Both the position numbers and the translations under genes were made by a program. A stretch of DNA of 64,000 bases, taken from the sequence record NC_021531.1. One strand, 5' to 3'. The notes under the pieces are model-generated. The model saw only the letters and a program-made list of their open reading frames with translations. It ran no database searches and was not told where the DNA came from. Below, in pieces: positions 4,304 through 45,474 of this stretch; position 1 is the stretch's first letter; the number at the start of each line of letters is the position of its first letter.

Positions 4304-4801
4304 ATGCCATCATTAAAGTTTCTCCGAGAGTCTGAAATCGGCGGGGATTTGTTCAACGCGCCTGAGACGTATAAAGTCGTTACGGTGAATCAGGTCGGTG
4401 CTATGGGTCGGGGCATAGCACTGGCGTGTAAAGAACGTTATCCCATTGTCTATCGGGAGTACCGTTGGGCATGTCGTGAGAAACTTTATTTCCCCGACGA
4501 TGTCATGGTGTTTGACGAGGAGAAGGTGATTCTCCTCGCGACCAAGCACGACTGGAAGGACCCATCTACCGTTGAAATAATTACGAGAGGGTTATATGGT
4601 TTGAGTCGCCAGTTGCCCACGTTAAACGCATCCGTTGCCCTTCCGCCATTAGGAATGGTTAATGGGTGGTTGAAGAAATCTCAGCGTGCTGAGGTTTTTT
4701 CTTTGCTGGTTGAACTTTTCTACAAACAGGATTGTACAGTGAGAATGTACCTTCCAGATGTTTTGTATGAGGAGGTACATGCAATGTACCATTCCAAATA
4801 G
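4304..4801 (+). CDS. macrodomain protein, DarG/Poa1p-type ADP-ribosylhydrolase
   Basis: VVTVNQVGAMGRGIALACKERYP, ATKHDWKDPS and VALPPLGMVNG match DarG-type macrodomain motifs. Confidence 0.82.
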   Translation: MPSLKFLRESEIGGDLFNAPETYKVVTVNQVGAMGRGIALACKERYPIVYREYRWACREKLYFPDDVMVFDEEKVILLATKHDWKDPSTVEIITRGLYGLSRQLPTLNASVALPPLGMVNGWLKKSQRAEVFSLLVELFYKQDCTVRMYLPDVLYEEVHAMYHSK

Positions 4802-4806
4802 GGATG

Positions 4807-4826
4807 GATATATATTCTCATTGTGG
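4807..4826 (+). promoter_or_regulatory. putative early promoter
   Basis: GATATATATTCTCATTGTGG, a variant of the repeated motif. Confidence 0.45.
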
Positions 4827-4955
4827 CTAATAGGTTAGCCCGAGAACGTCTAATAATTAATCTCCGCAGGAGGCAGACTTAAGAACACCACGCCATTGGG
4901 GTAGTTGCATTGGCTACAAACCAGCGTTCAACAATTCGCACGAGGATAACCTTAA

Positions 4956-5810
4956 ATGAAACGTTTATTTTTAGGCTTAGCAATCCTGCTTACAAGCCTG
5001 CATGCAATGTCGTCGACGTCCACCGGCTCCCACTGGGACCGTCATAAGCAGACTGTCGTTAAAGCCGCCAAGAAAGTTGGCGTATCTCCAAAGCTCGCTA
5101 CCGCTATCGCCAGTCGCGAATCAAACGGTAAAGCGAATGCTAAAAATCAATACTCGTCAGCATCCGGGCTGATGCAAGTTACGCGTCCTACTGGTAGAAC
5201 AATGTTGCGTAAGTACGGTAAAGAGTTAGGACTCCCGTCTAACGCAGACATCATGAACCCAAAGGTGAACGCGCTGTTAGGGACTGTCTATTTAAGAGAA
5301 GTCCGTCAGGAAATGAATCAACGCTTGGGCCGCCCAGCTCGGGACCACGAAGTGTATCTTGCATATCACTTCTCACCCTCAAAAGCTGAGCGAATTATTA
5401 AAGCGCGTCCTTCTAAACGTATGGTTGATATTTACCCCGCTGCCGCCCGTGGCAATAAAGCGTGGTATTATCACAAAGGTGGAAAAGCAAAATCCGCAGC
5501 CGATGTTATCAACATGGCGCGGGCAAAAGTCGGCAAAGAGTCGAAGTATGGTCACGAAGCTGTGTCAGTTGCCAAAGCACCGAAGGCAAAACCCGCGCCA
5601 ACCGCTACCGCGAGCATGGGTACTACCACACCTGTCTGTTTTGCAGATTTGCAATCAGAGTCGTCAGAGCCTCGTGAACACCCTTTAACGGCAAAAGGTA
5701 AGTTAGGCAGTAGCGTCATATCGCGCTGCCGCGATACCGCTGCCATGGACCCGGAGTTTGATACTGCCATGGTGCAGTTTTCCTTGAAAGATAATTATTT
5801 GCGCTATTAA
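4956..5810 (+). CDS. lytic transglycosylase (SLT, phiKZ gp144-like catalytic domain) with N-terminal signal peptide
   Basis: AIASRES (catalytic Glu), SSASGLMQV, NPKVNALLG and EVYLAYHF. N-terminus MKRLFLGLAILLTSLHA looks like a Sec signal. Confidence 0.88.
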   Translation: MKRLFLGLAILLTSLHAMSSTSTGSHWDRHKQTVVKAAKKVGVSPKLATAIASRESNGKANAKNQYSSASGLMQVTRPTGRTMLRKYGKELGLPSNADIMNPKVNALLGTVYLREVRQEMNQRLGRPARDHEVYLAYHFSPSKAERIIKARPSKRMVDIYPAAARGNKAWYYHKGGKAKSAADVINMARAKVGKESKYGHEAVSVAKAPKAKPAPTATASMGTTTPVCFADLQSESSEPREHPLTAKGKLGSSVISRCRDTAAMDPEFDTAMVQFSLKDNYLRY

Positions 5811-5823
5811 CTAGGAGCAGACG

Positions 5824-6297
5824 GTGAGAACGAAACAGCCAGCCTTTGTACGGCCAACGGGCGAGGCACTACGCCTGACCGCGAACCAGGCAGTAAGTCA
5901 GACATTGAAAAGTAACTTTGGCGTGAAGAGTACCTTCTATCGTGTGCACGATTGTCAGCACACCTTAGAGCGGGCATTAGAACGCCGTAACTTTGACTTT
6001 GACACAGCGTACGGATTACTCTATTTGATGGGTCACCGTCCACAGCTATTAGAAACAGCCGATGGTTTTGCGCTGCTTCTCCTCCCGTCTGCAAGTTATA
6101 ACCGCACCATCACTCTTGACGTCGCGATTCAGGAGGCTAAAGTGTATCTGGCCAGAACGCTGAAGCTCGAAGATGAAACGAAGTCGGTGGTGAAAATGTT
6201 GAGTGTGTTCGGTAACGGTATGACGATACTGCGTGACCCGAATCTCCCTCGTGAGAAATTCCTGCTTGAGTTTAAACGCAATGAAATCGCTGCTTGA
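5824..6297 (+). CDS. hypothetical protein
   Basis: GTG start after AGGAG. Confidence 0.7.
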   Translation: MRTKQPAFVRPTGEALRLTANQAVSQTLKSNFGVKSTFYRVHDCQHTLERALERRNFDFDTAYGLLYLMGHRPQLLETADGFALLLLPSASYNRTITLDVAIQEAKVYLARTLKLEDETKSVVKMLSVFGNGMTILRDPNLPREKFLLEFKRNEIAA

Positions 6298-6793
6298 GTT
6301 ACCCCGTTTTTACAATCAACCGGATAGCATGGAAATCCTAACCGTGACCATGCCGGTGATTGTAGAGGCGTGTCGTTTAGATGTGTCAATTGAACAGACC
6401 GGTGAGATGGCTCCAACAGTTGCCACCGCGTTTGACATTGATGCCTATCTTGATTCGCCTCACTTGGTTAAGCCGTACGAGATGCGAGTAGTGGTTGCAC
6501 CTGAACACGGGGCGATTTATCAGGTTCCTCAACCTGCGCCATTGTTCGGCGATGCGTTATCGTTTGATGTCATGCGTGCAACATGGTTCCGTCCAGGTGT
6601 TGGGATGAGTTATCGCAAGTGGGCTCTTGCGACGTGGGATGACAATGCAGACACAATCACTGTGTTAGCATCACTCATTGACTCACCACTCACGCCGGTA
6701 GACGTTGTGGTCAGCGATGTCGAAGGTCGAACTAACGCATGCATTATCACCCCTGATATTTGCTACGTACGCATCGACCCAAGCAAACAATAA
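6281..6793 (+). CDS. hypothetical protein (start uncertain, 6281 or 6329)
   Basis: ORF overlaps the upstream stop and ends just before a terminator. Confidence 0.7.
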   Translation: MKSLLELPRFYNQPDSMEILTVTMPVIVEACRLDVSIEQTGEMAPTVATAFDIDAYLDSPHLVKPYEMRVVVAPEHGAIYQVPQPAPLFGDALSFDVMRATWFRPGVGMSYRKWALATWDDNADTITVLASLIDSPLTPVDVVVSDVEGRTNACIITPDICYVRIDPSKQ

Positions 6794-6801
6794 AAAAGAA
6801 A

Positions 6802-6846
6802 CACCTCCGTACCCTTTTGGGGTACGGGGTGCTCTTTTATTTCTTT
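6802..6846. terminator. bidirectional intrinsic terminator
   Basis: CCGTACCC-TTTT-GGGGTACGG hairpin, A-run before and T-run after, between convergent genes. Confidence 0.8.
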
Positions 6847-7458
6847 TTATTTTTTGTCGCCGACGATTGCCAACAACTGTTCATTCAGCGCCGTGAGTTC
6901 GTCGTTGCGTTTCTTCGCTGACGCTAACTGCTCTTCGAGCGGGACGGCATCGCGAATATTCTTCTTACGCTTACTCTCCATTTCGATATGCTGGTCATTA
7001 TTAACCTGACCTTCATAGCGCATGGTGGAGATATACGGGACAGGTTTAATCCCTAACTTCGATTGGACGAAGTTTGAGAAGTCCCCGGTGAAGGCACCGA
7101 CATCAACATAGTCCGGCAGCAACGCCAAGTCTATCACCAACACATTACGGTTATACTTTAACCCGGTTAAACCCGGATACGAAGACAGATACGTATTGGG
7201 TACGTAACGTACTTCGCCGTCATTGGCCTTGAACACCAGTATCGAAGCATTTAACGCGGCATCTGCCTTGTAGTCTGCCTGAGTGATGTTATGGGGCGCG
7301 TAGTACGTCGAATAGACCGGCTTATTGTTGCGTTCAAGTTCCGGGAAGGTGCGTATCGCATCTAAGCGATAGATAACACCCTGCGGGAGCTCGAACGGTG
7401 AAAGGCAGACAAAGCTGCCCTCACAGTTGATAGGGGGCGTAAGTGGAGTACGCGCCAT
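6847..7458 (-). CDS. putative virion structural protein (phiKZ-like conserved)
   Basis: 203 aa, co-transcribed with the upstream 445-aa gene. Position between SbcC and RNase H is typical of this phage group (synteny from memory). Confidence 0.55.
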   Translation of the reverse strand: MARTPLTPPINCEGSFVCLSPFELPQGVIYRLDAIRTFPELERNNKPVYSTYYAPHNITQADYKADAALNASILVFKANDGEVRYVPNTYLSSYPGLTGLKYNRNVLVIDLALLPDYVDVGAFTGDFSNFVQSKLGIKPVPYISTMRYEGQVNNDQHIEMESKRKKNIRDAVPLEEQLASAKKRNDELTALNEQLLAIVGDKK

Positions 7459-7467
7459 TTATCCTCC

Positions 7468-8805
7468 TTAGACGACTTCCGGCCAGACCGAAGTACGGCT
7501 GAGTACACGGTATTCCACATTTTCATGTTCGAAGATGTAGAACGCCAAGTCTTTGTTACTTTCATCAATGACCTTCACCACATCAGTGGTGCCGGCATAC
7601 GGATGGTACTCTTCAGCCGCAATCAAAGCCTGGATGTACAGACGAATCCACTCGGTGGTGGGTTTCGACACACGTGAGATTTCACTGGACGACGTAGAGA
7701 TTAACGCGTAGTCCGGAATGGTTTCATGCAGTGTCTTTTTATTGTCTGCGTTTTCAGGCCCACTGATACAGACCGCGCTAAGCGATTTGTACTGCGCAGG
7801 GATAATGCACACATCAGTGGCTGGCACTTTATGCGGAATAGTTGTGTCTGATTCAGTCGCAGACCATTCGCCGAAAGTGTCAATGGATTTCAGGATGAAA
7901 TCGTATGGAAGCATCGGGGAGTAGAGTGACGCAATATCTTCCATGTTGGGGATACCGCGAACCTGCCAACCCGGAATAAAAGTAAAGCGTGTAGTCGAGA
8001 AAAGATCGGGAAACACTTTCGCCCAATCCGCACGACTATATCCTGACTGCGACAGAACGGCGTTTTGATACGCCTCTTTGACGTATGTCGGGTTACGTCC
8101 CTGAGGGCCGTAAATGATACAGGTAAAGACGATATTCGGGATAGTGGATTCACTGTTCTCGCGGTCATGCCACGTGTAGTAATTCGTGTGGATGGCCGTA
8201 TAAGGGAATTTATTTGCCATTTCATTCACTTTATCGTGATGGTCTGGCAGATTCCATTCTTCTAATGCTTTTTCGACCACCGTCTTAACCGACTGGAATG
8301 TGTCGATAGGATTCAGCATCAAAATGACTTCGATGTCAAAGCCACGATAATCCTTGGCAAAGTCGGCATCGGAGAACCAGAGACGGATTTCGTTCTCTTC
8401 CTGCCCTTCGAGCGTGTAGGCAATCCAACGTGGGAACCAGTTCCCCTTGCCTTCAATCATCGCGCCGGTAGACACTTTAGAGATTTTGGATGAAAACTGT
8501 CCGACCAGCAGACGCTGGAATTCGACTTCGTCGTTTTTCAGCACGCCGTTAATCGCTTGTGAATAAATCCACTGCGTGACTGTTAATACGTTATCGGAGA
8601 ACGACGACGGAACAGTAATGGCTACCTTATCTCGTTTCGAGGTGAAGGCAACCAGTTCCACCTGCATGTTTGCTTTACTAAACCATTGTTTATCTTTAGC
8701 AAAGCTGGTAGCATACTCTGAGAGCTCCCCTACAGGAGCTGTAACACCGCCGGGTGTATTGTCTTTCAGCGGTCCAATATTGATGAACCCTTGTAAATCG
8801 TACAT
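7468..8805 (-). CDS. putative virion structural protein (phiKZ-like conserved)
   Basis: 445 aa. N-terminus MYDLQGFINIGPLKDNTPGGVTAPVGELS resembles a conserved phiKZ-like virion protein. GGAG RBS. Confidence 0.6.
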   Translation of the reverse strand: MYDLQGFINIGPLKDNTPGGVTAPVGELSEYATSFAKDKQWFSKANMQVELVAFTSKRDKVAITVPSSFSDNVLTVTQWIYSQAINGVLKNDEVEFQRLLVGQFSSKISKVSTGAMIEGKGNWFPRWIAYTLEGQEENEIRLWFSDADFAKDYRGFDIEVILMLNPIDTFQSVKTVVEKALEEWNLPDHHDKVNEMANKFPYTAIHTNYYTWHDRENSESTIPNIVFTCIIYGPQGRNPTYVKEAYQNAVLSQSGYSRADWAKVFPDLFSTTRFTFIPGWQVRGIPNMEDIASLYSPMLPYDFILKSIDTFGEWSATESDTTIPHKVPATDVCIIPAQYKSLSAVCISGPENADNKKTLHETIPDYALISTSSSEISRVSKPTTEWIRLYIQALIAAEEYHPYAGTTDVVKVIDESNKDLAFYIFEHENVEYRVLSRTSVWPEVV

Positions 8806-8825
8806 ATAACTACTCCGAGGTAAAT

Positions 8826-9341
8826 ATGGTAGCGGGTATAATTAAGCTCCTACCACTATTGACGTTTCTGCTGGAAGTATTCAAATCTGATGATGGCAAA
8901 TTCACGGCGAAAGCTAAAGCAGTTTTCCTCGCGTTTCTGGCAATTCTCAGCTTCTCTGCTTACGTTTCGTACGCATACGTTCAGCAGTTTCACGCTTTAG
9001 TGGAACTGAAAGCTCATCAGCAGTACCTGATAAAGTCCGAAGGCGACGCCAACGGGCGGGCACTCCGGTTAGAAAACCGGGTTACCGAGTTGGAAAACAA
9101 ACTCGATGTCTGCCGCAACCGGCCGCCATATGATGGCGTGTCGGTGCGAACTCCAAAACCAACTCAGCCAGATATTATCTCTACGCCAGCCGCCGTAATT
9201 AAAACTCCAACCCCTCCCAAACATCCAGTGCCGTATAAGCCAGATGTAATTCTGCCGACTACGGCTATTGTTTCACGGGAGGATAAGGAGAAAGGGCTTG
9301 CTGACCGTATGGATAAAATCACGCGACACATAAATAATTAA
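8826..9341 (+). CDS. membrane-anchored coiled-coil protein, candidate i-spanin
   Basis: TM segment at about aa 31-52, coiled coil with one Cys, Pro-rich linker. Confidence 0.45.
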   Translation: MVAGIIKLLPLLTFLLEVFKSDDGKFTAKAKAVFLAFLAILSFSAYVSYAYVQQFHALVELKAHQQYLIKSEGDANGRALRLENRVTELENKLDVCRNRPPYDGVSVRTPKPTQPDIISTPAAVIKTPTPPKHPVPYKPDVILPTTAIVSREDKEKGLADRMDKITRHINN

Positions 9342-9350
9342 GAGGTCGTT

Positions 9351-9797
9351 ATGCCGTGGGTAATATGGTTCTTAGTAATAATGCTAACCGGCTGTTCATC
9401 TTTCAGTGGGTATCGTGACGGTGCGGTGTCGCAACTGAAGGATGGGCCGGACGTTACTGATTACCGTAACGCCGAATCCAGCGATGCCGTATTACGCGAT
9501 TACGTGACAGAGGTCAATCTGTACGCGTTTTATGTATTTAACTACACGAAAGCACTGAACGAGTACGCAATGAAACACGGCTGGCATCCGTTACCGATAC
9601 CGCCGGTTTGCGAACAGTACACGATGCCGGGATTAATGGACATTCCCGATTTTGTGTTCCGTCGCGGAATCAAATCCGATGACGAAGTTGACATGGCCTT
9701 AGCAAGTTATATCCGCGCACTACGGGCAAGGATGAACGAAAATGCACTGCGCGTAAATAGAGCTTTTGCTAAGCACCGTGAGGCGTGTATTTACTAA
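9351..9797 (+). CDS. lipoprotein, candidate o-spanin
   Basis: Signal with lipobox LTGC (MPWVIWFLVIMLTGC-SS). Ser-Ser after the Cys suggests outer-membrane sorting. Confidence 0.55.
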   Translation: MPWVIWFLVIMLTGCSSFSGYRDGAVSQLKDGPDVTDYRNAESSDAVLRDYVTEVNLYAFYVFNYTKALNEYAMKHGWHPLPIPPVCEQYTMPGLMDIPDFVFRRGIKSDDEVDMALASYIRALRARMNENALRVNRAFAKHREACIY

Positions 9798-9803
9798 TAA
9801 GAC

Positions 9804-9838
9804 GGCTGTCCTTCGGGACAGCCCCTTCTTACTTTTTT
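9804..9838 (+). terminator. intrinsic terminator
   Basis: GGCTGTCC-TTCG-GGACAGCC followed by a T-rich run. Confidence 0.8.
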
Positions 9839-9880
9839 ACGCTATACCGTATTACTGTGTATACATTAAGGAGACCCCCA

Positions 9881-10609
9881 ATGGCACATTACATTCCAAA
9901 GCTTCCGGCTATCGTCCATGCTATCGATACCGAAACCAAGGCGTTACGACCGAATGCGTATATTCTTAGCATGGGTGGCTCGACCTTTGATATTGCTACC
10001 TTATCACTGCTGGGTTGTACTTACGTGGCAGTTGACCCTAATGACCCCGAAGCAGATAAAATCTTCGACACCGACTCGAGCACCGTGGCGTGGTGGAACG
10101 GTGAAGGTGACCCGGCCTTTGCACCAACACCAGAAGCGAAAAAGGCAGCATGGTCGGGCACCACTAAAATCGATGTGGCGCTGAAAATCGTGGTCGAATA
10201 CTTCGAACAGTTTAAAAAGTTCGACTCTGTACTGGTTAGTCGCGGCCCAGAATTCGATATGCCGATTATGTGTAATGCGTTAGTTGCATGCAACGTGTTC
10301 CAAGGTATCTTCCGTAAGTTCTCAGCCTGCGAATCAGACCGTACTGTCGAACGTCTGATGTTGGCGTTCGGGTTGGATATGAATCAGGCGGTGGAAGAGC
10401 ACAACTGGGTCGGTAAAGGTCAGTGGGTTGAACATCACCCGAGCTTTGACTCTGCACGCAGTGCTTATCGTACGGCACGTGCCTATCATCTGGCGCATAT
10501 TGCCAAGAACTACGGGTTTGAGAAGATGCTGATTGCACATAAGGCGCTGTGTGAAGGCACTTATAACCCGGCTCTGGGATACAAAGGGGAATTCAATGGA
10601 GCAGGCTGA
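9881..10609 (+). CDS. DEDDh-family 3'-5' exonuclease
   Basis: AIDTETK (ExoI), SRGPEFDMPIM (ExoII), HHPSFDS (ExoIII). Start moved to ATG 9881 after TAAGGAG. Confidence 0.82.
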   Translation: MAHYIPKLPAIVHAIDTETKALRPNAYILSMGGSTFDIATLSLLGCTYVAVDPNDPEADKIFDTDSSTVAWWNGEGDPAFAPTPEAKKAAWSGTTKIDVALKIVVEYFEQFKKFDSVLVSRGPEFDMPIMCNALVACNVFQGIFRKFSACESDRTVERLMLAFGLDMNQAVEEHNWVGKGQWVEHHPSFDSARSAYRTARAYHLAHIAKNYGFEKMLIAHKALCEGTYNPALGYKGEFNGAG

Positions 10610-12137
10610 TGTAGCGGTGTTGTATACGGACGGTAGCCATTTCCCTGACCCGCATGGGTCAGGTGCAGGCATCTTCGCGTACACCATCGACAAACTGGAT
10701 GAAGGGTTTGCTGAGGGTTACAGTTTCCCGGGCATCCCTGAGGCTATCACGTCGGAAGGCTTTAAGCCAATGACCGTCTCTGACCCGAAACCTCTGTTGC
10801 CTGAAGGTCGGGTGAAGTTTTACGAGGCGGTAATTCCGGTGCGTCCCTCTTCTGCGCAGGTGGGTGAACTCGTTGCCTTCATTGCCGCGTTCGACGTTAC
10901 CCCCTTCAAGGCGAAGAAATACATTATCTACGCCGATTCCAATTACATGATTAACACGGTCACGGATTGGATTTGGGGCTGGGAACGTAAAGGCTGGATG
11001 CGAGCGGACGGTACGCCGTGTGCAAACCTCGATTTACTCAAACGCATGATTACGATTCTGCGGGCGATTAAAGAGCAGGGTATCACGTTGATAGTGAGAA
11101 AAATCAAAGCGCACAACGGGCACTTTGGTAATGAAGCTGCGGATAAGTTGGCGAAGCAAGGTGCTGCTGCATCTGCATTAACCAACGAACACAACTTCAC
11201 TCCGTTCTGGCGTGAGATTTATAACGAAGCGCCGGAAGACGAGGAAACGCCGGAGGTCTTCCAGAAACCGGAACTCCCGGGCGGCGGTATGGATATCACG
11301 TCACTGCCATCGATAATGTCGCACAAGTGGCATTACCTGCTGTCGGATGAAGAAATCCCGAGCATGACGCTCGCTAACGGCGAACGTTGGGAGTACGTTC
11401 TGTCTGGCCACCACGCGAAAGACAAGAACGACTTGGTTCTGGTCGGTAAGTTCTTGCCGGACGCGATGTTCTCCGTGACGATGCACCGTGAAGCGCCGCG
11501 TAACTTGAAGTTCATCGTTGATGAGCATGCAAGACGTGCGTGGGAAGGTGTGCCGATGCTGAAACAGTATCGTGCCGTCACCATGATTAACGGCGATTAC
11601 CTCAAACGTAAGAAGTTCGTTGAGGCAGCTAAGGACGGATTGCCGGTTGACCAGATGACGTTTAAGTCTGACGGTAACGCGTGGATGTTTGAAGACACCT
11701 GTATCAGTTACATGTTACGACCGGCTCTGCTTTCTTATCGGGCGCTGGAGATTCGCGATGAGCTGGCACAGATGTTGAAGGATGTTGTCGAAGGACATTC
11801 GAGTGTGGTCTTTAATGACATCACCGATAAGTTCTTCGATGAGGAACACAAACCGAGAAAGGACTACTACCGTAACGTAGACCGCAGCATTAAGATTGCG
11901 GTTAACTACCCGGGTAGCGAAAAGCCTATTGACGTGATTCTTTCACGTAGCATAGACATACCTTCTCGTACCGAGCTTAATCGCATTTATGAACCGGGCG
12001 GACGATTCGGTGTTGCGACGTGGCGACGGGACACACATTTAACTGTCTATGCTCTGGTGTATTTGGGCAAAGACGCACACGGCTTATGGATGGGATACTA
12101 CAGCGCTAAACGTATCCTGACGTTAGAACAAATTTAA
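10596..12137 (+). CDS. rnh: ribonuclease HI with long C-terminal extension (phiKZ gp155-like)
   Basis: LYTDGS, AQVGEL, IYADSNY, WERKGW, KIKAHNGHFGNEAADKLA. Start moved to ATG 10596. Confidence 0.92.
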   Translation: MEQADVAVLYTDGSHFPDPHGSGAGIFAYTIDKLDEGFAEGYSFPGIPEAITSEGFKPMTVSDPKPLLPEGRVKFYEAVIPVRPSSAQVGELVAFIAAFDVTPFKAKKYIIYADSNYMINTVTDWIWGWERKGWMRADGTPCANLDLLKRMITILRAIKEQGITLIVRKIKAHNGHFGNEAADKLAKQGAAASALTNEHNFTPFWREIYNEAPEDEETPEVFQKPELPGGGMDITSLPSIMSHKWHYLLSDEEIPSMTLANGERWEYVLSGHHAKDKNDLVLVGKFLPDAMFSVTMHREAPRNLKFIVDEHARRAWEGVPMLKQYRAVTMINGDYLKRKKFVEAAKDGLPVDQMTFKSDGNAWMFEDTCISYMLRPALLSYRALEIRDELAQMLKDVVEGHSSVVFNDITDKFFDEEHKPRKDYYRNVDRSIKIAVNYPGSEKPIDVILSRSIDIPSRTELNRIYEPGGRFGVATWRRDTHLTVYALVYLGKDAHGLWMGYYSAKRILTLEQI

Positions 12138-12156
12138 AATATATGTTATCGCGTGA
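12138..12156 (+). promoter_or_regulatory. putative early promoter
   Basis: AATATATGTTATCGCGTGA directly after the RNase H stop. Confidence 0.65.
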
Positions 12157-12179
12157 TACCAAAATGAGGAGTATTTGCA

Positions 12180-12956
12180 ATGCAAGTAGTAATGAGTTAT
12201 GAATTGTCGAAACTGAATGTTGAGTTTCGCAGCCTTTTAATGAAACACCTCATCACGCGATACTTTGAGGAGAACAAAATCCCGGACGTTTGGGCCGAGG
12301 AAAGCGAAGTCATTATTGAAGAGCTGGACATTCCGGCTCAGTTGGTTATCAGTCGTCTGTTTGGCGGTTGGTTGGACGCAGTGGTCAACCACGTCAATCA
12401 GGGTACGCCGCTTAGCGCAGAAGAGCTGGTCGAGTACCCCCACCAGATGGACGACCTCTACGACTCGTACAGTTTCGAGTCTGAGAAAGAATACCACCGG
12501 GACTTCTCCGGTTACATGGACCAGACCGCGTGGGAATTCATGGCCAAAGCTGCCGAGTATCTGACCGAGGATGAGATGCTCGCGACGATTCACGAGTTGC
12601 TTTCAAGCATCGGTGCAGAAATCTACGGCACCTTCAAAGCGCTATCGTTGGGAAAAGTTGTCGGTCTGTGGCACTCAATGGAAAATTACGAGCAGCTTAT
12701 CTGGCAAGGTAAGCCGGTGCTGTTCGCCATTGAAGCCGATGACTACGAGGTTCTGTATACAGGGCCGAAATCTGAGGAGTTCGCAGGTTCAGAAGAATCT
12801 AAGGTCACCACGGGGCCGGGAGAATATTTCTATCTGTGGAACGGCAAACTCATCACGTACGGTAACCGCATCGTGAAAATCCCAGCTGGCGATACCATTC
12901 AAGTCTGCGAACTGAAAGACGATGTGGTATCCAAAATCGAAAGGGCTTCTGAATGA
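12180..12956 (+). CDS. acidic hypothetical protein (paralog of the next gene)
   Basis: GAGGAG RBS. Glu/Asp-rich. Confidence 0.85.
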   Translation: MQVVMSYELSKLNVEFRSLLMKHLITRYFEENKIPDVWAEESEVIIEELDIPAQLVISRLFGGWLDAVVNHVNQGTPLSAEELVEYPHQMDDLYDSYSFESEKEYHRDFSGYMDQTAWEFMAKAAEYLTEDEMLATIHELLSSIGAEIYGTFKALSLGKVVGLWHSMENYEQLIWQGKPVLFAIEADDYEVLYTGPKSEEFAGSEESKVTTGPGEYFYLWNGKLITYGNRIVKIPAGDTIQVCELKDDVVSKIERASE

Positions 12957-13759
12957 AGAAAGTCATCAGTGGCGTAATCACTTCCCTCAAAACTTCCATT
13001 CGTAATGAGTGGGATACGTGGTGGGAAAGTGAATTCAGCGTGGCAACACCTGAGCATTATCGACCGTACGTTGAGGGTATCAACATCTCCGGCCAGTTAA
13101 GTATCGAGCAGGTGAAGTCCCTGCCGTACTGGACGATGGCGAACGACGCGGTGCAGGAGTTCCAGAAACGTCTGTTCGAAGCGCTGTTCAAAGAGTATAA
13201 CTTGCGGGACACCTACGACCATTCGCATTTCATGCATGTGCTGTTGGATGTGTTCGGTGAAACGTGGGATAACGACCTGCAAGTGCTGCTCGACAAAGTG
13301 GATACCCACGAGTGGGAACACCGTGATGCGTGTGACGTGTTCGTTAAGAACATGATTACCACGTTCATGGACCAGCTTGTGGAAATCATGACGTCAGAGT
13401 GGTCTGAGGCGTTCTACTTCGGCTTCTTTGAAGAGATGGATGGGATTGAGGAAAGTCTGCCAGCGTTGGGTATCACACCACTGGTCGACCTGGCCGATTT
13501 CTCTGCTGACCCACAAAGTCGTATCTGCATCATTGAGAGCGACGATGTGTCTTACGAAGCCATTAAGACGTGGGACGGTTCACAAGACGTAATCGAATGG
13601 TTACGTCAGGGGCTGGAGAACGCGCATTTGCAACGCATCATCTGGCTGGTTAATGGGCAAGTCGAACTCGACATGGCTCACCGTACGCTGAACACTGGCG
13701 ACATTATTAAGAAGTGCCTGTTAAAATTAGGAGCAAACCCAAGTGCAGTTAATCATTGA
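12953..13759 (+). CDS. acidic hypothetical protein (paralog of the previous gene)
   Basis: ATGA overlap. Shares IE.DD, L.NG and GD.I..C.LK with 12180..12956. Confidence 0.85.
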   Translation: MKKVISGVITSLKTSIRNEWDTWWESEFSVATPEHYRPYVEGINISGQLSIEQVKSLPYWTMANDAVQEFQKRLFEALFKEYNLRDTYDHSHFMHVLLDVFGETWDNDLQVLLDKVDTHEWEHRDACDVFVKNMITTFMDQLVEIMTSEWSEAFYFGFFEEMDGIEESLPALGITPLVDLADFSADPQSRICIIESDDVSYEAIKTWDGSQDVIEWLRQGLENAHLQRIIWLVNGQVELDMAHRTLNTGDIIKKCLLKLGANPSAVNH

Positions 13760-14276
13760 TTTTCGTAATAGTGACGTATCCGACGCGCTCCGCAATCTGA
13801 GCAACGGCATGAAAACCAATGTTATGCTTCTTATCGAAGAGGCATTGGGCATGACGGAAATCAAGTTGTCGGTTGACACGGGTAACGATCATGTGTTTAT
13901 CAACAACGCTAATTTGGCTGATATCGTGGAAGATGTCATCACCCGCGAACTGCAACGCATCTTCGGGCAAGCGGTAACGATTAACACCGGTAATTTCAAC
14001 GACGTGTCTGAGTTCCTCGAACTATGCTCACAACGTTTCGGTGAAATCTTTAACCGACTGGTTACCGAAGCACAGGCCACCGAACTGACAGCCAAAATGT
14101 TGGTCGACGGTCAGGCGGCAGGCGACTTCAAAGATACCTTGACCAATCTGGTGCCAGCGGAAACGTGGGCGGGGATTGAGAAAGAATTCGATGAAGGCCG
14201 TCAGCAAGCTCTCCGTATAATGCGTACATCGCTGGAAAGTTTGATGGCATCACTCGAACCGGGGTCAGTCATGTAA
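13743..14276 (+). CDS. hypothetical protein
   Basis: GTG start after AGGAG. Confidence 0.8.
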   Translation: MQLIIDFRNSDVSDALRNLSNGMKTNVMLLIEEALGMTEIKLSVDTGNDHVFINNANLADIVEDVITRELQRIFGQAVTINTGNFNDVSEFLELCSQRFGEIFNRLVTEAQATELTAKMLVDGQAAGDFKDTLTNLVPAETWAGIEKEFDEGRQQALRIMRTSLESLMASLEPGSVM

Positions 14277-14286
14277 GGAGTGGCGT

Positions 14287-14741
14287 ATGCAATACGTCTT
14301 CTCGTTAGATTACAACCAGCTCTCTATTCCCAACCGTCGTCATCTTCGCAATGCAGTGGCTCGCTTACGGCGAGCTGTTGCTTCGGGGATTGTGCTCAGT
14401 CATGGGAAAGGTCAGTGGAAAGGATGCAGTAAAGCAGTTGCTTGTCAAATGGCCGGTGAGGTTAAACCTCACTTAACAAAAACTCACACCGTTGAAATTA
14501 AACGCGTGGGGACAGCGGAAGCGGTCTTTAAAATCCTGCGCGACGCTGCTAACCTTGAAGTCGTATTGCCTGACAATATCCAATTAGATGAAAAGACTGT
14601 ACACGGTCTCTCGCCCGAAGCGAAAGGTCGTATGCAGGGTGCTTGGCACTACTTTCGTGATACCGTGAAATGGATTACGGAAGATGAGCTGCATGAGCAA
14701 GCTGAACGGATATACGGTCAGTTGATTGCCAAGAAAAATAA
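14287..14741 (+). CDS. hypothetical protein (about 150 aa). Probable true stop TAA 14739-14741 is out of frame by one base.
   Basis: AAGGAG RBS. The track ORF (to 15114) runs through a terminator and antisense into the next gene. Confidence 0.6.
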
Positions 14742-14748
14742 GAAACTG

Positions 14749-14772
14749 CCTACTACCCTCACGGGTAGTAGG
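14749..14772. terminator. bidirectional terminator hairpin
   Basis: CCTACTACCC-TCAC-GGGTAGTAGG between convergent genes. Confidence 0.75.
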
Positions 14773-14778
14773 TCGGTT

Positions 14779-15540
14779 TTATGCTTTATCTTTTTTTGCC
14801 AGCGTTTTGATTTGGTCAGTAGTGGCGTTGATGCAGTTAGTCATCTCGTCAATCTGACGCATGAACAGGCCGAGCAGCTGAACCCACGCATCACACATGT
14901 CAACCAGTTTAACCAGCTCTTTCGACACGTTCGGGTTCACATCCGCTTCACTGATAATCTCGCACGAGCCAGAGATAGACTCGACCAGACCCAGAGTGTC
15001 TTTACGCATCGACTTAGAGATGGAGTCACGCAGTGCCTTAGCGCGGTGGAACGTGGATTCCAGTTCGCTGGCCGAGCGGTAAGTTTTCTCGAAGGCGCGT
15101 TGGTCAATTGCTGACGCAATATAGTTCTTCGAGAGTTTGCTAACGAGATCGTCAGGGTTAACATTAGACAGTGGGTATTTGAAACCTGACATGCGAAACG
15201 CTACGGGAACCGTTAACATAGCCGGTGCATTAGCCAGACCTGCCAGTTCGTTGTTAACGGGTTTCAACACACCGTCAACCACACCTTCCAGCACTTTCCA
15301 CACATCTTCGAGTTGTTTGATGTGGTCAAACACAAACGCGTTAAAGCCCGGCGGTACCGGAACCTGCATACCAAGGAAGTTGGCGTACTGCTCGCGTTTA
15401 ATCCATTTGCTGACTTCGTCGACATCGCTGTAAGTGGCCAGAACGACGTCGTCTTTGGTACCACTAAAAAAGCGTGGGACGATAGTGGTCACGTTACTGA
15501 CCATGGTGGCCATAGCTGGCCCGATGTCACGGATATTCAT
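14779..15540 (-). CDS. conserved hypothetical, probable virion protein
   Basis: 253 aa, divergent from uvsX as in phiKZ-like phages (synteny from memory). Confidence 0.6.
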   Translation of the reverse strand: MNIRDIGPAMATMVSNVTTIVPRFFSGTKDDVVLATYSDVDEVSKWIKREQYANFLGMQVPVPPGFNAFVFDHIKQLEDVWKVLEGVVDGVLKPVNNELAGLANAPAMLTVPVAFRMSGFKYPLSNVNPDDLVSKLSKNYIASAIDQRAFEKTYRSASELESTFHRAKALRDSISKSMRKDTLGLVESISGSCEIISEADVNPNVSKELVKLVDMCDAWVQLLGLFMRQIDEMTNCINATTDQIKTLAKKDKA

Positions 15541-15642
15541 TGGTAATCCTTCGGTTAAGGGTCGGAATCATACTAAAGACACTTTTTACAACTTGACGAT
15601 AAGATATGTATAACTAACCCCAATAATTAATGGAGCACTACG

Positions 15643-17121
15643 ATGGCTGGTCCGAAGAAGGCTACTCAAGGTGAGGCTATTCGCCCACGTTTTAACATCT
15701 GGACTATTTTTGACCATGCGCTGGGCGAGTATGTGAAAGGCGAAGACGGCCTTTGGTACCTCAACGGCGGCTTTGGACACATCATGGGTTTCGCAGGTCG
15801 TGGTAACACTTTTAAATCCTTCCTGCTCGACTACTGCATCATGACCATTCTGCTCCGCTACCGCGCAGAGTGGGCATCGAAGTACGACACCGAAGTTTCT
15901 GCACAGCTTTCTCGTATGCAAACCGTGGTACGTTGTATCTGTAATGCCAACGGCTGGGAATATGACTACGCGGAACATGCCGTAGAAGTCCTGATGGAAA
16001 AAGGCTGCTTCAACATGCAGTCTTCCGACCTCGTGCCGGGCGAGCAGTGGTGGGCCGACTACATCCGTGATGAAGTTGAAGACCGCTACAAACAGTACAT
16101 GGGTAAAAAGAACCTGCGCGAAACGCCGTTCCCTGACCCGATTCGTAAAGAAAACAAAAAGATGCTCAACCCATGGGCATACGGTTGCGACTCGCTTTCC
16201 GAATGGAAAACGTCCAAGATGGAAGATGCGCGTGACGACTCTAACGTGGGTGACTCTGAACAGAACGCCTTGGCTGCACAAGACGCTAAGCAGAAGTCAG
16301 ACATGATGGGTCGTTGGCCAAACGCACTGGCGCGTGGACACTTCTACATGGGCTTCGTGGTTCACATCACGGATAACATGCAGATGGGTCGTATTGAACC
16401 GGGCAAAAAGCTCGATGAGTTCAAAGGCAACATCAAGTTTGCTAACGTGCCGGGTCGTGCTGTAACCTTCCTCACTAACTCCCTGCTGGTTGCCACTCAC
16501 TCTGGTGACTGTAAACAGCCTAGCAGCTTCAACTCCAAAACCGGTGTTGAAGAGCCGATGTTCCCTTCTGCGAAACAGAAAGGGAAAAGCAGTTCCGTTA
16601 ACGATTTGAAAATCATCCGCTATACCCAGTTCCGTGCCAAGTCCGGCCCGACGGGTGTGAAGATGGACATGATCTACTCTCAGGAACTCGGATTCATGCC
16701 GCACCTGTCTCTGTGGTATTACTTGAAAGAAACCTTAACCGGTGATTTCGGGTTTACACGTTCGGGGCATTTCTATGAGCTTAGCCTGCTGCCGGGTGTG
16801 AAGTTTGGTCGTACGACTATCTTCGACATGGCGCTTGAGAACCGTCGTTTACAGCGTGCTTTGGAAATTACTGCGGGTCTGGCGTATATCCAGAATAACT
16901 GGTTCCGCTTAGAGCCTGAGTACCATATCACGCCGCAGGAGCTTTACGATAAGGTGAAGGAAGCCGGGTTTGACTGGGATGAAATCTTAGACAACACCGT
17001 AGAATATTGGCAGTTCAAAGACCAAGAGACCAAAACCTCAAAACGTTGCGTCACGGTAAAAACCTTGCTGGACATGGCGTTAAAAGGTCTGAAGCCAAAG
17101 TTCCTCACAGTGAAAAAATAA
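15643..17121 (+). CDS. uvsX: UvsX/RecA-like recombinase (phiKZ gp152-like)
   Basis: Walker A GFAGRGNTFKS, DSLSEW, KYDTE, and RecA-like core FRAKSGPTG. Confidence 0.8.
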   Translation: MAGPKKATQGEAIRPRFNIWTIFDHALGEYVKGEDGLWYLNGGFGHIMGFAGRGNTFKSFLLDYCIMTILLRYRAEWASKYDTEVSAQLSRMQTVVRCICNANGWEYDYAEHAVEVLMEKGCFNMQSSDLVPGEQWWADYIRDEVEDRYKQYMGKKNLRETPFPDPIRKENKKMLNPWAYGCDSLSEWKTSKMEDARDDSNVGDSEQNALAAQDAKQKSDMMGRWPNALARGHFYMGFVVHITDNMQMGRIEPGKKLDEFKGNIKFANVPGRAVTFLTNSLLVATHSGDCKQPSSFNSKTGVEEPMFPSAKQKGKSSSVNDLKIIRYTQFRAKSGPTGVKMDMIYSQELGFMPHLSLWYYLKETLTGDFGFTRSGHFYELSLLPGVKFGRTTIFDMALENRRLQRALEITAGLAYIQNNWFRLEPEYHITPQELYDKVKEAGFDWDEILDNTVEYWQFKDQETKTSKRCVTVKTLLDMALKGLKPKFLTVKK

Positions 17122-17130
17122 CTTTTGGTT

Positions 17131-17152
17131 GGGTAGGGGGAAACCCCTACCC
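17131..17152 (+). other. GC-rich GNRA hairpin without U-tract
   Basis: GGGTAGGGG-GAAA-CCCCTACCC. Confidence 0.7.
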
Positions 17153-17167
17153 TAAAGGACTTTAAAA

Positions 17168-17479
17168 ATGCGTTATCAAGATGTGGTAATTGAGCGCCTG
17201 CGTCAAGGTCTGGCTAGCGTTGACCACGGCATCGCGCAAACTTTTGTTGACGAGTGTAGCTCACCGGCGAGTTCTCTGTACGAGTTCTCCGACCGCGTTA
17301 ATCGTCACTTCGCTGGGCTGTTACAAACGTGCGGGGTTAAACCTCAGCCACGTGACTTCGAAGTACCGGAAGACAATGACGCAATCCCGTACTGGATTGA
17401 GGATTTGGAAAACCGGGTTCATCCTGTCCTGAAATCAACCCGAGGTAAGAAAGATGGCACTGAATCAACAGCTGCGTAG
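17168..17479 (+). CDS. hypothetical protein
   Basis: AAGGA RBS. Overlaps the next gene. Confidence 0.75.
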   Translation: MRYQDVVIERLRQGLASVDHGIAQTFVDECSSPASSLYEFSDRVNRHFAGLLQTCGVKPQPRDFEVPEDNDAIPYWIEDLENRVHPVLKSTRGKKDGTESTAA

Positions 17480-19289: not shown

Positions 19290-19312
19290 ACAGTACCTCT
19301 CTAAAAGGAAAC

Positions 19313-19333
19313 GGATATATGTTATCAATGTGC
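19313..19333 (+). promoter_or_regulatory. putative early-type promoter
   Basis: GGATATATGTTATCAATGTG. Confidence 0.45.
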
Positions 19334-21937: not shown

Positions 21938-21948
21938 TGGGAGAAGTT

Positions 21949-22965
21949 ATGATTACCATTAACCCGAAAGTAGTACCGTTAACACGTCTGGCAGGGTTGC
22001 TGAGGGTGTTAACGCTGGGTACGCGCTACGACCATTCTTGCCAAGGAGAAGGTAAAGAGAAAGTCATTGCCCGTATCAGACACGACATGTTGTTAGAGCA
22101 GGTGTTTCCATCGAAGTTCGAAGAGGGGATGTCTGAGCTGGCGCTGCTCGAGATTTATAAAACGGGGAAATACGATGCGAAGTACGGCATAGCCATGGCA
22201 CAGCGGAACGGCTTAAACCTGCCGAAAGCGAATGCCCACGACTACGATGTGACCAAATGCAGTTTGAGGTCGCTGAGCGTACATCCCGGACCGCTGCGTC
22301 ATGACCGCGATACCGAACTGTTCGTGCATATGCGTCGTATTGGTGCGGTGTCGATTGTGGGTGAGCAGGAAGATGGTACTGACGGGGTTAACCATGTCAA
22401 TATCTATTCGGATGGGCGCACCATGGTAGGTCGTCTCGCCAGTAATTTTAGCGAAGGTCCATTCGAGACAATAGACGGTACGTTCTTCACGCTTGAAGGC
22501 TACTATCACTGGTTGCGCATTCGTGACTGGACACAGGCTACCAAATACGCTTTTAACATGGCGGCGATGGAAGACATGTATCCGGGCCTACGGAAACTGC
22601 GGACTGTGACCGGTACGGAAGCCATTCGCTTAGGGCGCACACTCAAGTCCAACATCTACGGCGGTACGAAATACCGTACAGGGCCTTTCTCGAAAGAGTC
22701 GTTGGAGCGTTTTCGTTGGGCGTTAGCCGGGAAGTTACACAAGCTGCGTTACAATAATGTGACACTGGGTAACTATTTGTCGATGATGGTGTATTGCGGT
22801 TTTCCGTTAACGCATTACTACGTGTATAACGGTAAAGTGAAATACCCGGACTTCCGCGAGTGGTTGCCTAACTTATTGTCTGGCTTGTTGGAACATATAG
22901 ACCCCAACGATTCGGACTTCGATTTAGCTGCGCTACAAGCGAAAATAACAGAGGGTTCGATATGA
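21949..22965 (+). CDS. NADAR-like (T4 gp30.3/YbiA-like) domain protein with N-terminal extension
   Basis: DGVNHVNIYSDGRTMVGRLASNF, TLEGYYHWL and GTEAIRLGR match the phage NADAR pattern. Start ATG 21949 after GGGAG. Confidence 0.62.
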   Translation: MITINPKVVPLTRLAGLLRVLTLGTRYDHSCQGEGKEKVIARIRHDMLLEQVFPSKFEEGMSELALLEIYKTGKYDAKYGIAMAQRNGLNLPKANAHDYDVTKCSLRSLSVHPGPLRHDRDTELFVHMRRIGAVSIVGEQEDGTDGVNHVNIYSDGRTMVGRLASNFSEGPFETIDGTFFTLEGYYHWLRIRDWTQATKYAFNMAAMEDMYPGLRKLRTVTGTEAIRLGRTLKSNIYGGTKYRTGPFSKESLERFRWALAGKLHKLRYNNVTLGNYLSMMVYCGFPLTHYYVYNGKVKYPDFREWLPNLLSGLLEHIDPNDSDFDLAALQAKITEGSI

Positions 22966-23627: not shown

Positions 23628-23633
23628 TATACA

Positions 23634-23668
23634 CCCAGCCCCGGTGGGCTGGGTTTCTTTCTTTTCTT
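23634..23668 (+). terminator. intrinsic terminator
   Basis: CCCAGCCC-CGGT-GGGCTGGG followed by TTTCTTTCTTTT. Confidence 0.8.
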
Positions 23669-43300: not shown

Positions 43301-43310
43301 GGAATCGAGA

Positions 43311-44033
43311 ATGAACGCCATTGAAACAGCAACGCGTGACCCTAAAAAAGTGCATGCGGATTTAGTAGACCAGGACACGATGACCATCACCAAAGGTGGT
43401 TGTTACATTTACGTCCCGGTAGGTTATGCGTCGAAAGAGATGGCGTTCATCTCTTCTGAAGTTCTGATTATGGGGATGTTTGCCATCTCCACTGACCGTA
43501 AAACGTACGGCGTTTCCAACGTAACTACGTTGATTGAAATTACCCCCACCACGTTTGAGCAGGTGGATATATTTGGGGAGCCGTATTACGAGTTTCGATT
43601 TGACCCGGGCACGGTGGTGTTCCCGAACCGGATGCTTCAATGCTTACCCGGTCACGTGTACAACATTGTCTCGTACGTCTATGACTACGGGAATGTGCCT
43701 TTTTGGATGAATGCAGTCGACCACGCCGAATTACTTGCAGATGTGCCGTTGTGGAATACGTTTAAAGTGTTCAACGACCAAATAGACCGCGACGTTTATG
43801 CCGCCCACATCCAACGTAATCCTAAAAACGTCCGTGAGTTTTTCCGCGCCAGTCTGAAAAAGGATAGCGATATTTATAACCCGGTGCAATTCATTCCTCT
43901 ACGTGACGGTTCTTTGAACAAAACGTCTCGGCTGGCGAAACTGTCCGACACGGAACTGCGCCGTGGTATCCGGTCAGCCTTAACCAACGACCCGGTTCGT
44001 GCCGAGCCGCTCGAAGACATCTTTATGCGATAA
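43311..44033 (+). CDS. conserved virion protein, possibly vRNAP-associated (phiKZ gp176-like)
   Basis: 240 aa, directly upstream of the protease. Assignment from remembered synteny only. Confidence 0.45.
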   Translation: MNAIETATRDPKKVHADLVDQDTMTITKGGCYIYVPVGYASKEMAFISSEVLIMGMFAISTDRKTYGVSNVTTLIEITPTTFEQVDIFGEPYYEFRFDPGTVVFPNRMLQCLPGHVYNIVSYVYDYGNVPFWMNAVDHAELLADVPLWNTFKVFNDQIDRDVYAAHIQRNPKNVREFFRASLKKDSDIYNPVQFIPLRDGSLNKTSRLAKLSDTELRRGIRSALTNDPVRAEPLEDIFMR

Positions 44034-44049
44034 TATCTGGAGGATTGCA

Positions 44050-44856
44050 ATGGAAAATATGTCGTTGCGCTATAACTGCGTAGCGCTCGCGGGGGTGAAC
44101 AACCCGCAAGGTTTACAACAGGACGACAGCGGTTACTACCGTGTCCTGTTGGGTGCACTGAACGTGTTCAACTCTGAGAACATCTTCTACACCTACAACG
44201 AATCGAAGCATGTGTTCGAACGTTCGAACATCTTCATGCGTAAGATTGCCGCCGGTAACCTGTACGGTGAATGCGACCACCCTGAATGGGGTCCGGGCAT
44301 GACCGAAGCGGAATTCATGGACCGTAACGAGTGGATTGAAATCACCAACACAGCGTTCCATATCCGCGAAGTCGAGCCTATCGTTACCAACGAAATGTGT
44401 AACGGTCAGCCTGTCGTTGAAATCTGGGGATGGATTAAACCGGAAGACAACGATCTGGGTCGTCGCCTGAAAGCCGGTTTGGATAACCCGCATCAGAACG
44501 TGTGCTTCTCTCTGCGTGCCATCGTGCGTCAAGGTGTCATCGGTGGTGTGCGTACCCGTCGTATCGATAAGCTGGTTACCTTTGACTGGGTTATTGAAGA
44601 CGGCCTGCGTATCTGTAACAAATACTCCAGCATGGTTCGTGGCTCCACGGTAGCTCAGGAATCAACGCGTACCTTTATCGACCGTCCGGTCAGTCGTGAA
44701 GCCTGCCAGCAGATTCTGGCAACCGGCGCACGTCACCTGAAGGTTGCTACCGAGTCTCGCCGCCGTAACGTGGTTGACTCTGCGCGTGAATACCTGTCTA
44801 CCATCGACAGCCGTCCTCAGGTGAAACATGTTGGTTTGGGAGCGAGGGTTTGGTAA
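44050..44856 (+). CDS. prohead maturation protease (phiKZ gp175-like)
   Basis: LYGECDHP (catalytic His), NVCFSLRA (catalytic Ser) and LVTFDWV. Start moved to ATG 44050. Confidence 0.88.
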   Translation: MENMSLRYNCVALAGVNNPQGLQQDDSGYYRVLLGALNVFNSENIFYTYNESKHVFERSNIFMRKIAAGNLYGECDHPEWGPGMTEAEFMDRNEWIEITNTAFHIREVEPIVTNEMCNGQPVVEIWGWIKPEDNDLGRRLKAGLDNPHQNVCFSLRAIVRQGVIGGVRTRRIDKLVTFDWVIEDGLRICNKYSSMVRGSTVAQESTRTFIDRPVSREACQQILATGARHLKVATESRRRNVVDSAREYLSTIDSRPQVKHVGLGARVW

Positions 44857-45474
44857 ATGGCGATTTCGCTGGCGACGTTAGAAACATGGCGTAACGGCCA
44901 GAATCCCAAACTATTCTCGCGTTTGCGGCCTCGTGGGATTGAGACCGCACCTTTGCACATCAGTGCAAGTCCTGTTCGTAAGTTTATTCCCCGTATTCCG
45001 TTGTCCTGCGCACCGGGCGAAGACCAAACGGTCGCTCGTGTCTGTTGCGCACTTTCGTTGGAGAACTGTTTTAAGGGTGCAGCCTGGAACTTTAAAGAGA
45101 CCCCTCCGAAAAGGTTCCACGTGTACGGCTTTAATGAGAACGCGGTGATTGACCCCACCCCGACTCTCACACAAGAGCCGTCTCGGAACGGTGAGGTTTG
45201 GATTGTGCCTCATCGTTTATCGAACTGGGATTTAACACCAGAGTCCGTAGGGCAAATGCGTTTGCACTCCCACACGGAAAATTTGACTCGCTTTACTTAC
45301 ATCTTGCAGACCTACACGGACGTTATCCTCAATGATGAACAGACCCTCGGCAAAGGATGGTGGCGTATCGGTGTCCATTTCAATGGCAATAACGGTATAA
45401 CCCTATCTTACGACGGGGAATCAAACAGTAATGAATTTGGTAACGCGGCAAATGTTTATTCGGTCATTAGCTAG
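44857..45474 (+). CDS. hypothetical protein with possible ADP-ribosyltransferase-like fold
   Basis: PLHISAS...KFIPRIP...EDQTVARVCCALSL...NGEVWIV. The CDS is solid but the fold is inference. Confidence 0.4.
   Translation: MAISLATLETWRNGQNPKLFSRLRPRGIETAPLHISASPVRKFIPRIPLSCAPGEDQTVARVCCALSLENCFKGAAWNFKETPPKRFHVYGFNENAVIDPTPTLTQEPSRNGEVWIVPHRLSNWDLTPESVGQMRLHSHTENLTRFTYILQTYTDVILNDEQTLGKGWWRIGVHFNGNNGITLSYDGESNSNEFGNAANVYSVIS

Follow-up and report, generated by a model that had tools for sequence, protein, structure and literature searches.

Two putative stand-alone ADP-ribose erasers, with no recognizable writer, in Cronobacter phage CR5

Cronobacter phage CR5 probably encodes two independent, stand-alone ‘erasers’ of ADP-ribose (ADPr) marks, each of an orphan-antitoxin type, and no cognate ‘writer’ of those marks, i.e., no corresponding ADP-ribosyltransferase (ART). 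The window from which this is concluded is 64,000 nucleotides long and consists of bases 159,990-223,989 of the CR5 record (NC_021531.1 / JX094500.1), which is the right end of that record, a placement based on window bases 4,000-24,000 matching CR5 at 100% from end to end; positions below are counted from the window's first base. Three genes are at issue. These are CR5_177 (165 amino acids, aa), which encodes a macrodomain protein; CR5_199 (338 aa), which encodes a NADAR-like protein; and CR5_214 (205 aa), which had been proposed to encode an ART. All three are labelled as hypothetical proteins in RefSeq, with the RefSeq coding sequences agreeing with the starts that had been assigned to these open reading frames (ORFs) in an original prediction, one made from the sequence alone. 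That prediction viewed the three together as a ‘complete toolkit’ for the writing and erasing of ADP-ribosylation, one that would serve either to neutralize both DarTG classes or instead to run a reversible ADP-ribosylation cycle of the phage's own. The former fits with what is known of related phage proteins, i.e., AdfM in relation to DarT2 (PMC13309987) and AdfN in relation to DarT1 (PMC11825919). The latter, a self-run regulatory cycle and the exciting part of what had been suggested, is unsupported, and in place of a toolkit there probably are two erasers without a writer.

CR5_177 (4304..4801, plus strand) had been described as a DarG-type macrodomain, and this is borne out by comparison with DarG structures and models. 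Its best relatives among solved structures are DarG macrodomains, those of M. tuberculosis (MtbDarG, 5m3i; E=5.5e-17) and T. aquaticus (TaqDarG, 5m31; E=5e-14), and it matches as well both the NCBIfam antitoxin_DarG model (E=1.5e-28, over model positions 5-155 of 338) and the PADLOC DarG model (E=6.9e-29). The match to the generic Pfam Macro model is marginal (E=0.11). By sequence, that is, CR5_177 is nearest to DarG macrodomains rather than to other macro clades. In an alignment consisting of CR5_177, Asesino gp217, the phiKZ-species protein KTN4_132, and three plasmid DarGs, residues Asn29, Lys81, Gly117, and Gly121 of CR5_177 are invariant, and CR5_177 Asn29/Lys81/Trp84/Gly117/Asn120/Gly121 align with TaqDarG N22/K80/W83/G117/N120/G121. 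K80 is the catalytic Lys of TaqDarG and N22 its substrate-positioning Asn, and of the TaqDarG substitutions K80A abolishes activity, with N22A second to it in severity (PMC5179494). These active-site residues of the DarG2 macrodomain are conserved in CR5_177. What distinguishes CR5_177 from DarG2 is that it stops after the macrodomain and is without the ~190-residue, DarT-binding C-terminal part (165 aa vs. ~350 aa for DarG), and also without an adjacent DarT gene. It is, in other words, a phage-encoded orphan.

Stand-alone macrodomains of this sort have already been described from nucleus-forming phages. AdfM is a chimallivirus macro family named by Morgan et al. 2026 and found in about half of chimalliviruses, with PhiKZ gp104 and its Asesino and PhiPA3 homologues as examples (PMC13309987). 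The PhiKZ protein strips DarT2-made ADP-ribose from DNA and guards against DarTG2, and nuclear localization has been shown for the PhiKZ, PhiPA3, and Asesino proteins (PMC13309987). CR5_177 resembles these in being a stand-alone, ~160 aa, DarG2-like macrodomain of a chimallivirus, with catalytic Asn and Lys and without a DarT-binding domain. It differs in being known from its sequence and in having diverged, to 45.5% identity with Asesino gp217 and 30% with the phiKZ-species protein. The gene neighborhood of CR5_177 also is as seen at the Asesino protein, since in both phages the macro gene is followed by a gene for an SLT transglycosylase, in CR5 this being CR5_178 (4956..5810, plus strand; so identified in RefSeq and by PHROG 4067). 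Given its DarG-type residues, its stand-alone nature, and its being by position the orthologue of Asesino gp217, itself an AdfM, CR5_177 is on sequence grounds a member of this already described family. Like DarG2 and PhiKZ AdfM, it most likely would take ADP-ribose off thymidine, i.e., in single-stranded phage DNA that has been modified by host DarT2-type toxins, and its site of action may be that of its relatives as well.

Two other records touch upon this macrodomain family. The 222,441-bp circular ‘plasmid unnamed1’ of Enterobacter ludwigii (NZ_CP134650.1, 17143-25616) includes a macro gene resembling CR5_177 (47.5% identity; 3998-4495 of that locus), with a gene for an SLT transglycosylase coming next, the same gene order as found in CR5 and Asesino, and this record has the look of a jumbo phage genome of the CR5 type which has been deposited as a plasmid. 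Gene 266 of Streptomyces phage JustBecause (MH744418.1; 1480-1935 of its locus; 151 aa), by contrast with its label of ‘ADP-ribosyltransferase’, matches CR5_177 via a macrodomain. As judged from sequence, this likely is a misannotation in which an eraser has been named as a writer, and gp266, as only a macrodomain, was dropped as an ART comparator.

CR5_199 can be divided into an N-terminal helical extension (aa ~1-140; 21949..22368, plus strand) and a divergent, His-type NADAR domain (aa ~141-338; 22369..22965, plus strand). That the protein is NADAR-like, as had been suggested, stands up, though only as seen with sensitive methods. Searches of Pfam, NCBIfam, PADLOC, and the PDB with the single sequence come up empty, and neither CR5_199 nor its close relatives match Pfam PF08719 or PF08010, i.e., they lie under the thresholds of the Pfam NADAR and Phage_30_3 models. 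With tblastn, the C-terminal half of CR5_199 (residues ~144-318) is found to be related to stand-alone proteins of 140-190 aa from hundreds of phages, spanning Ackermannviridae, Vibrio phages, GAP32/CBB-like giants, and Otagovirus. One of these relatives carries a NADAR annotation in its record. Another, from phage 7t3, displays sub-threshold matches both to Pfam NADAR (E=0.0054) and to Phage_30_3, which is the T4 gp30.3/AdfN family (E=0.23). A family profile, based on a 93-sequence alignment that was drawn from 175 profile-search relatives plus 12 relatives found earlier, matches in the PDB the NADAR:ADP-ribose structure 8bau (E=1.8e-5) as well as E. coli YbiA (2b3w; E=0.008). The AlphaFold2 model of CR5_199 (predicted local distance difference test, pLDDT, 91.6; predicted template-modeling score, pTM, 0.88) likewise points to YbiA 2b3w, which in a Foldseek search of the PDB is the one meaningful match (probability 1.00; template-modeling score, TM, of 0.57 as normalized to YbiA; E=0.13).

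Catalytic residues of NADARs also are retained. Across the family alignment Glu183 and Lys262 are invariant (both 93/93), with Gly229 and His289 nearly so (both 92/93), and it is Glu183 that lines up with the 8bau catalytic Glu. In the model, His289 immediately precedes a C-terminal beta-strand, and I take it to be the NADAR last-strand residue, a position occupied by Glu in YbiA-type, Asp in DarT1-linked, and His in phage gp30.3-type proteins (PMC11543638; PMC11125620). What CR5_199 shares with the phage NADARs (T4 gp30.3, AdfN-Bas32, and AdfN-Bas60; PMC11825919) and with the NADAR superfamily more generally (8bau and YbiA) is, that is, a YbiA fold, the catalytic Glu, a phosphate loop of Gly plus a basic residue, the gp30.3-type last-strand His, and existence as an orphan phage gene. 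Every phage NADAR tested to date removes guanine-linked ADP-ribose from DNA, and the AdfN proteins of T4, Bas32, and Bas60 act against DarTG1, not DarTG2 (PMC11825919). Given these precedents, the profile and fold matches, and the conservation of Glu183 and His289, CR5_199 is best described, as based on sequence and model, as an AdfN-like eraser from a lineage of divergent NADARs which goes undetected by curated models. As with DarG1 and AdfN, it most likely would take ADP-ribose off guanine bases.

Two features set CR5_199 apart from AdfN and other NADARs. The first is an N-terminal motif block that is peculiar to its family (Asp145, Gly146, His149, and Asn151). The second is the helical extension, which is all-helical in the AlphaFold2 model and which is found only in the CR5/Phobos clade (~140 aa, as in CR5) and, in shorter form (~85 aa), in SPN3US-type phages; it is not seen in other phage NADARs, nor in the stand-alone relatives, which are 138-214 aa in length. 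The extension has no PDB sequence match and no detectable relative. It is a candidate targeting or DNA-binding add-on of these chimalliviruses.

Some further observations concern the CR5_199 gene and its relatives. The frame of CR5_199 extends without interruption back to a GTG at 21937 that overlaps the CR5_198 stop and is four codons before the annotated ATG at 21949, making the true start ambiguous. SPFM1_00056 of a Salmonella phage (262 aa) aligns to the SPN3US gp224/CR5_199 family in permuted form, i.e., with the C-terminal motifs first, and this permutation probably is an assembly or record-start artefact. In Salmonella phage 7t3 (MK773491.1) the stand-alone NADAR-like gene (1159-1653 of its locus) is followed, after ~600 bp, by a gene annotated as ADP-ribosylglycohydrolase (2269 onward), and one metagenomic relative carries a DprA/SLOG-type Pfam match. 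These latter two are contextual hints of an ADP-ribose role for the family.

It may be that both erasers are real but that their main substrates are something other than DarT marks on DNA, that is, either small ADP-ribose-derived immune signals or instead RNA or protein that has been ADP-ribosylated by other host ARTs. This is possible though rather unlikely, and were it true, then a DarTG-specific interpretation would be too narrow, above all for the NADAR protein. A number of points indeed weigh against the assignment of these two proteins to DarT-made DNA marks. Iyer et al. (PMC9503650) view many phage macro and NADAR domains as acting on small ADPr-derived signals, not DNA adducts, and favor low-molecular-weight ADPr substrates for most of them; RNA-ADP-ribosylating defenses also exist and may be countered (Johannesman et al.). 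The T4 NADAR, which is of the His type, on its own failed to rescue DarT1 toxicity in one study (PMC11125620). The CR5_199 family, in addition to possessing its own N-terminal motif block and a 7t3 member that is near to a glycohydrolase gene, deviates at two phosphate-contact positions. One of these is Arg190 of CR5_199, at a Lys position that is seven residues past the catalytic Glu and at which family members have K, R, L, or S with roughly equal frequency; K-to-R at the phosphate-binding Lys leaves in vitro activity in the E. coli C7 NADAR (PMC11543638). The other is the K75 equivalent, which is Ile226 in CR5_199, Ile in the CR5 clade, and Lys in most relatives. Lastly, the Gly-rich ADPr-grasping loop of CR5_177 (G117-G121 in TaqDarG) has Val at the TaqDarG G119 position and Trp at the next Gly, and G119E reduced TaqDarG activity (PMC5179494). 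That same position is Ala in KTN4_132, the active phiKZ-species protein, and Val there is a caveat rather than a disqualification. Against action on other substrates are the closeness of CR5_177 to DarG macrodomains, with its chimallivirus relatives acting on DarT2-modified DNA, and the hydrolysis of guanine-ADPr on DNA by all of the NADARs that have been tested to date.

The preferred interpretation, then, is still of two erasers directed at DarT-made marks. CR5_177 and CR5_199, each within its own transcription unit, jointly would broaden the range of DNA-ADP-ribosylating defenses that CR5 tolerates. If this is right, then CR5 along with SPN3US/Asesino-type relatives would be shielding their DNA from both known DNA ADP-ribosylation chemistries, i.e., of thymine and of guanine, and would be doing so despite possessing a protein nucleus. 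This would extend what was recently found, i.e., that DarT2 is not kept out by a phage nucleus on its own. The premise that CR5 is a nucleus-forming phage, which came with the original prediction, is a reasonable one since CR5 is found in the chimallin-encoding phage set (supplement of Prichard et al. 2023) and since a phage nucleus has been observed with Enterobacter phage Sa, for which CR5 is the nearest genome match (bioRxiv 10.1101/2024.10.29.620934).

The presence of both a macrodomain and a NADAR in one jumbo phage genome nevertheless is expected and not remarkable, as Macro domains are found in 56% of jumbo phages, NADAR in ~48% of medium and jumbo phages, and the two co-occur in DNA viruses above chance (PMC9503650). 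Modestly new, instead, is a chimallivirus clade with an AdfM plus an AdfN-like enzyme that bears an added N-terminal domain. Also modestly new is the CR5_199-type NADAR lineage, as invisible to curated models. This is a large lineage, i.e., as found among chimalliviruses, Ackermannviridae, GAP32-like giants, and Vibrio phages, and with standard domain models missing it, existing counts of phage NADARs are underestimates.

CR5_214 (44857..45474, plus strand) is where a writer had been expected. There is no sequence, profile, or fold support for this ‘candidate ART’, and CR5_214 is instead an uncharacterized but conserved jumbo-phage protein that, along with 71 relatives, falls entirely within the unannotated phrog_5043. 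In a 71-sequence alignment of the family, His34, Arg61, Glu113, and Trp115 are invariant, Tyr90 is found in 63/71 and Ser36 in 56/71, and Glu55 and Asp56 also are conserved. His34, Ser36, Tyr90, and Glu113 are located on successive predicted beta-strands, giving a His-x-Ser, Tyr, Glu pattern which, I think, is the likely origin of the ART guess. That superficial likeness to the H-Y-E triad of the ART superfamily (DarT, Alt/Mod-type, and toxin-type) is what could be said for CR5_214 being a cryptic, highly divergent ART, together with its co-transcription with virion genes, as can be the case for packaged phage ARTs. A reversible ADP-ribosylation cycle of the phage's own, with CR5_214 as its writer, is very improbable, and equally so is the more specific version in which CR5_214, whose family is conserved within the virion RNA polymerase and prohead protease block of many chimalliviruses, is a cryptic NAD+-using enzyme with a minimal ART-like core (His34, Tyr90, Glu113) that makes up a write/erase system with the macro and NADAR proteins.

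The evidence against CR5_214 as an ART is of several kinds. Neither CR5_214 nor the 71 family members have an ART-clan Pfam match, CR5_214 finds nothing in NCBIfam or in PADLOC (DarT included), and the family profile finds zero PDB chains even at E<=10. The CR5_214 model is a confident one (pLDDT 91.8), and Foldseek with that model finds no ART fold in the PDB, the best probability being 0.18 and TM being <=0.25; a row for cholera-toxin A1 among these (TM 0.21, root-mean-square deviation of 13 Å, probability 0.07) is noise. In the BFVD the only matches are to uncharacterized jumbo-phage proteins, such as of Stratton, Noxifer, Eowyn, Ea35-70, and SL2. As the order of His, Arg, Tyr, and Glu in CR5_214 is reminiscent of DarT, the family was compared using hhalign with a DarT2 alignment of 81 sequences (two plasmid DarTs plus 79 genome loci), which returned a probability of 0.2% over 25 irrelevant columns, equal to that of unrelated control pairs. 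Nine longer CR5_214 relatives, checked for fusion partners, had only an HNH domain and noise. Following these comparisons, including with PHROG, CR5_214 was rejected as an ART. Its His34, Tyr90, and Glu113 are conserved but cannot be placed within an ART fold, and the invariant Arg61, the Glu55/Asp56, the Trp115, and a C-terminal beta-sheet domain are not ART features. The conserved His, Glu-Asp, Arg, and Glu suggest, from sequence, some enzyme or metal site, one not recognizable as that of an ART. With CR5_214 unsupported as an ART, the finding reduces to known anti-defense, an outcome that the original prediction itself had named as its refutation.

A writer might be located elsewhere, i.e., a genuine phage ART could be encoded by CR5 outside of the window, with the two erasers regulating or limiting its marks. 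ARTs are encoded by >40% of jumbo phages (PMC9503650), most CR5 genes are ‘hypothetical’, and ~170 CR5 proteins lie outside of the Pfam scan, yet this too is improbable, though not to the degree that a CR5_214-based cycle is. Within the window, a Pfam scan of the 47 further proteins found no ART, returning only DUF7193, DUF7194, tail tube protein, PhiKZ vertex protein, NT5C, and AAA lid; non-DarT ART families were scanned for within the window, and coverage of the CR5 genome beyond it is by product names and a DarT hidden Markov model (HMM). Among the RefSeq product names of the whole record except 150,001-159,989 no ART is annotated, and the DarT HMM, as applied to 1,705 CR5 ORFs (214 of 224 kb, i.e., all but those same bases), found no DarT-like ORF. 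HMMs for the macro, NADAR-like, and CR5_214 families found over the same 214 kb exactly one copy each. Phage T4, furthermore, has both ARTs and a NADAR, yet its NADAR counters a host toxin and not T4's own ARTs.

The three genes had been described as unlinked and this is confirmed by their being found in three separate plus-strand units, as delimited by strong, terminator-like hairpins. CR5_177 is within CR5_176-180, a unit that is preceded by a hairpin at 3880..3902 (plus strand; 10-bp stem, 6 GC pairs, T-rich tail) and ended by a bidirectional one at 6805..6829 (plus strand; 11-bp stem, 7 GC pairs). CR5_199 is within CR5_196-200, which ends at 23633..23654 (plus strand; 9-bp stem, 7 GC pairs, T-rich tail), 6 nucleotides past the CR5_200 stop. 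CR5_214 is within the long unit CR5_208-215, which starts with virion RNA polymerase (vRNAP) subunits and ends past CR5_215 at 45828..45849 (plus strand; 9-bp stem, 6 GC pairs). Phages such as these supply RNA polymerases and promoters of their own, and of the three genes it is only CR5_214 for which temporal class can be read from sequence, i.e., via its co-transcription with structural genes.

CR5_214 is located, within its unit, immediately following CR5_213 (44050..44856, plus strand), a prohead protease of the Peptidase S80 family (Pfam PF20034, E=8e-72; PHROG 3014) whose stop abuts the CR5_214 start. This block is common to SPN3US (gp243-gp246), pVa-21, Moabite, Eowyn, and a 233-kb metagenomic contig (with a protein that is ~21% identical), the order being vRNAP beta-prime, a small ORF, a phiKZ gp177-like head protein, a gp176-like vRNAP subunit, and the protease, with the CR5_214 relative to either side of the protease. 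An S80 protease gene is adjacent and on the same strand in 24/36 IMG/VR loci with CR5_214 relatives, and so too in 5 GenBank phages. In the other 12/36 loci, which are those of the most distant relatives, there is no S80 protease within 4 kb, and one of these adjoins a DnaB-like helicase and major-head-protein homologues. Protease linkage therefore is true of CR5/SPN3US/Moabite-type lineages and not of the CR5_214 family as a whole. SPN3US gp246, the CR5_214 orthologue, goes unmentioned in three proteomics papers on the SPN3US head and virion, which counts against a packaged ART and is weak evidence for gp246 not being packaged. My conclusion is of a CR5_214 that is a conserved protein of jumbo phages, co-transcribed with vRNAP, head, and prohead protease genes and unrelated to the erasers.

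Downstream of this unit (45915-47211) are genes for an NT5C-type 5'-deoxyribonucleotidase, CR5_216 (Pfam E=1.4e-5; PHROG 2643), and for an HD-domain protein, CR5_217, which together form a small nucleotide-metabolism cluster, and one distant IMG/VR relative of CR5_214 also adjoins an NT5C-like gene. Within the unit, the annotation of CR5_212 (43311-44033), which is just ‘virion structural protein’, could be sharpened, as gp244, the counterpart in SPN3US, has been identified as the fifth virion RNA polymerase subunit, i.e., the C-terminal part of beta-prime (PMC5694885).

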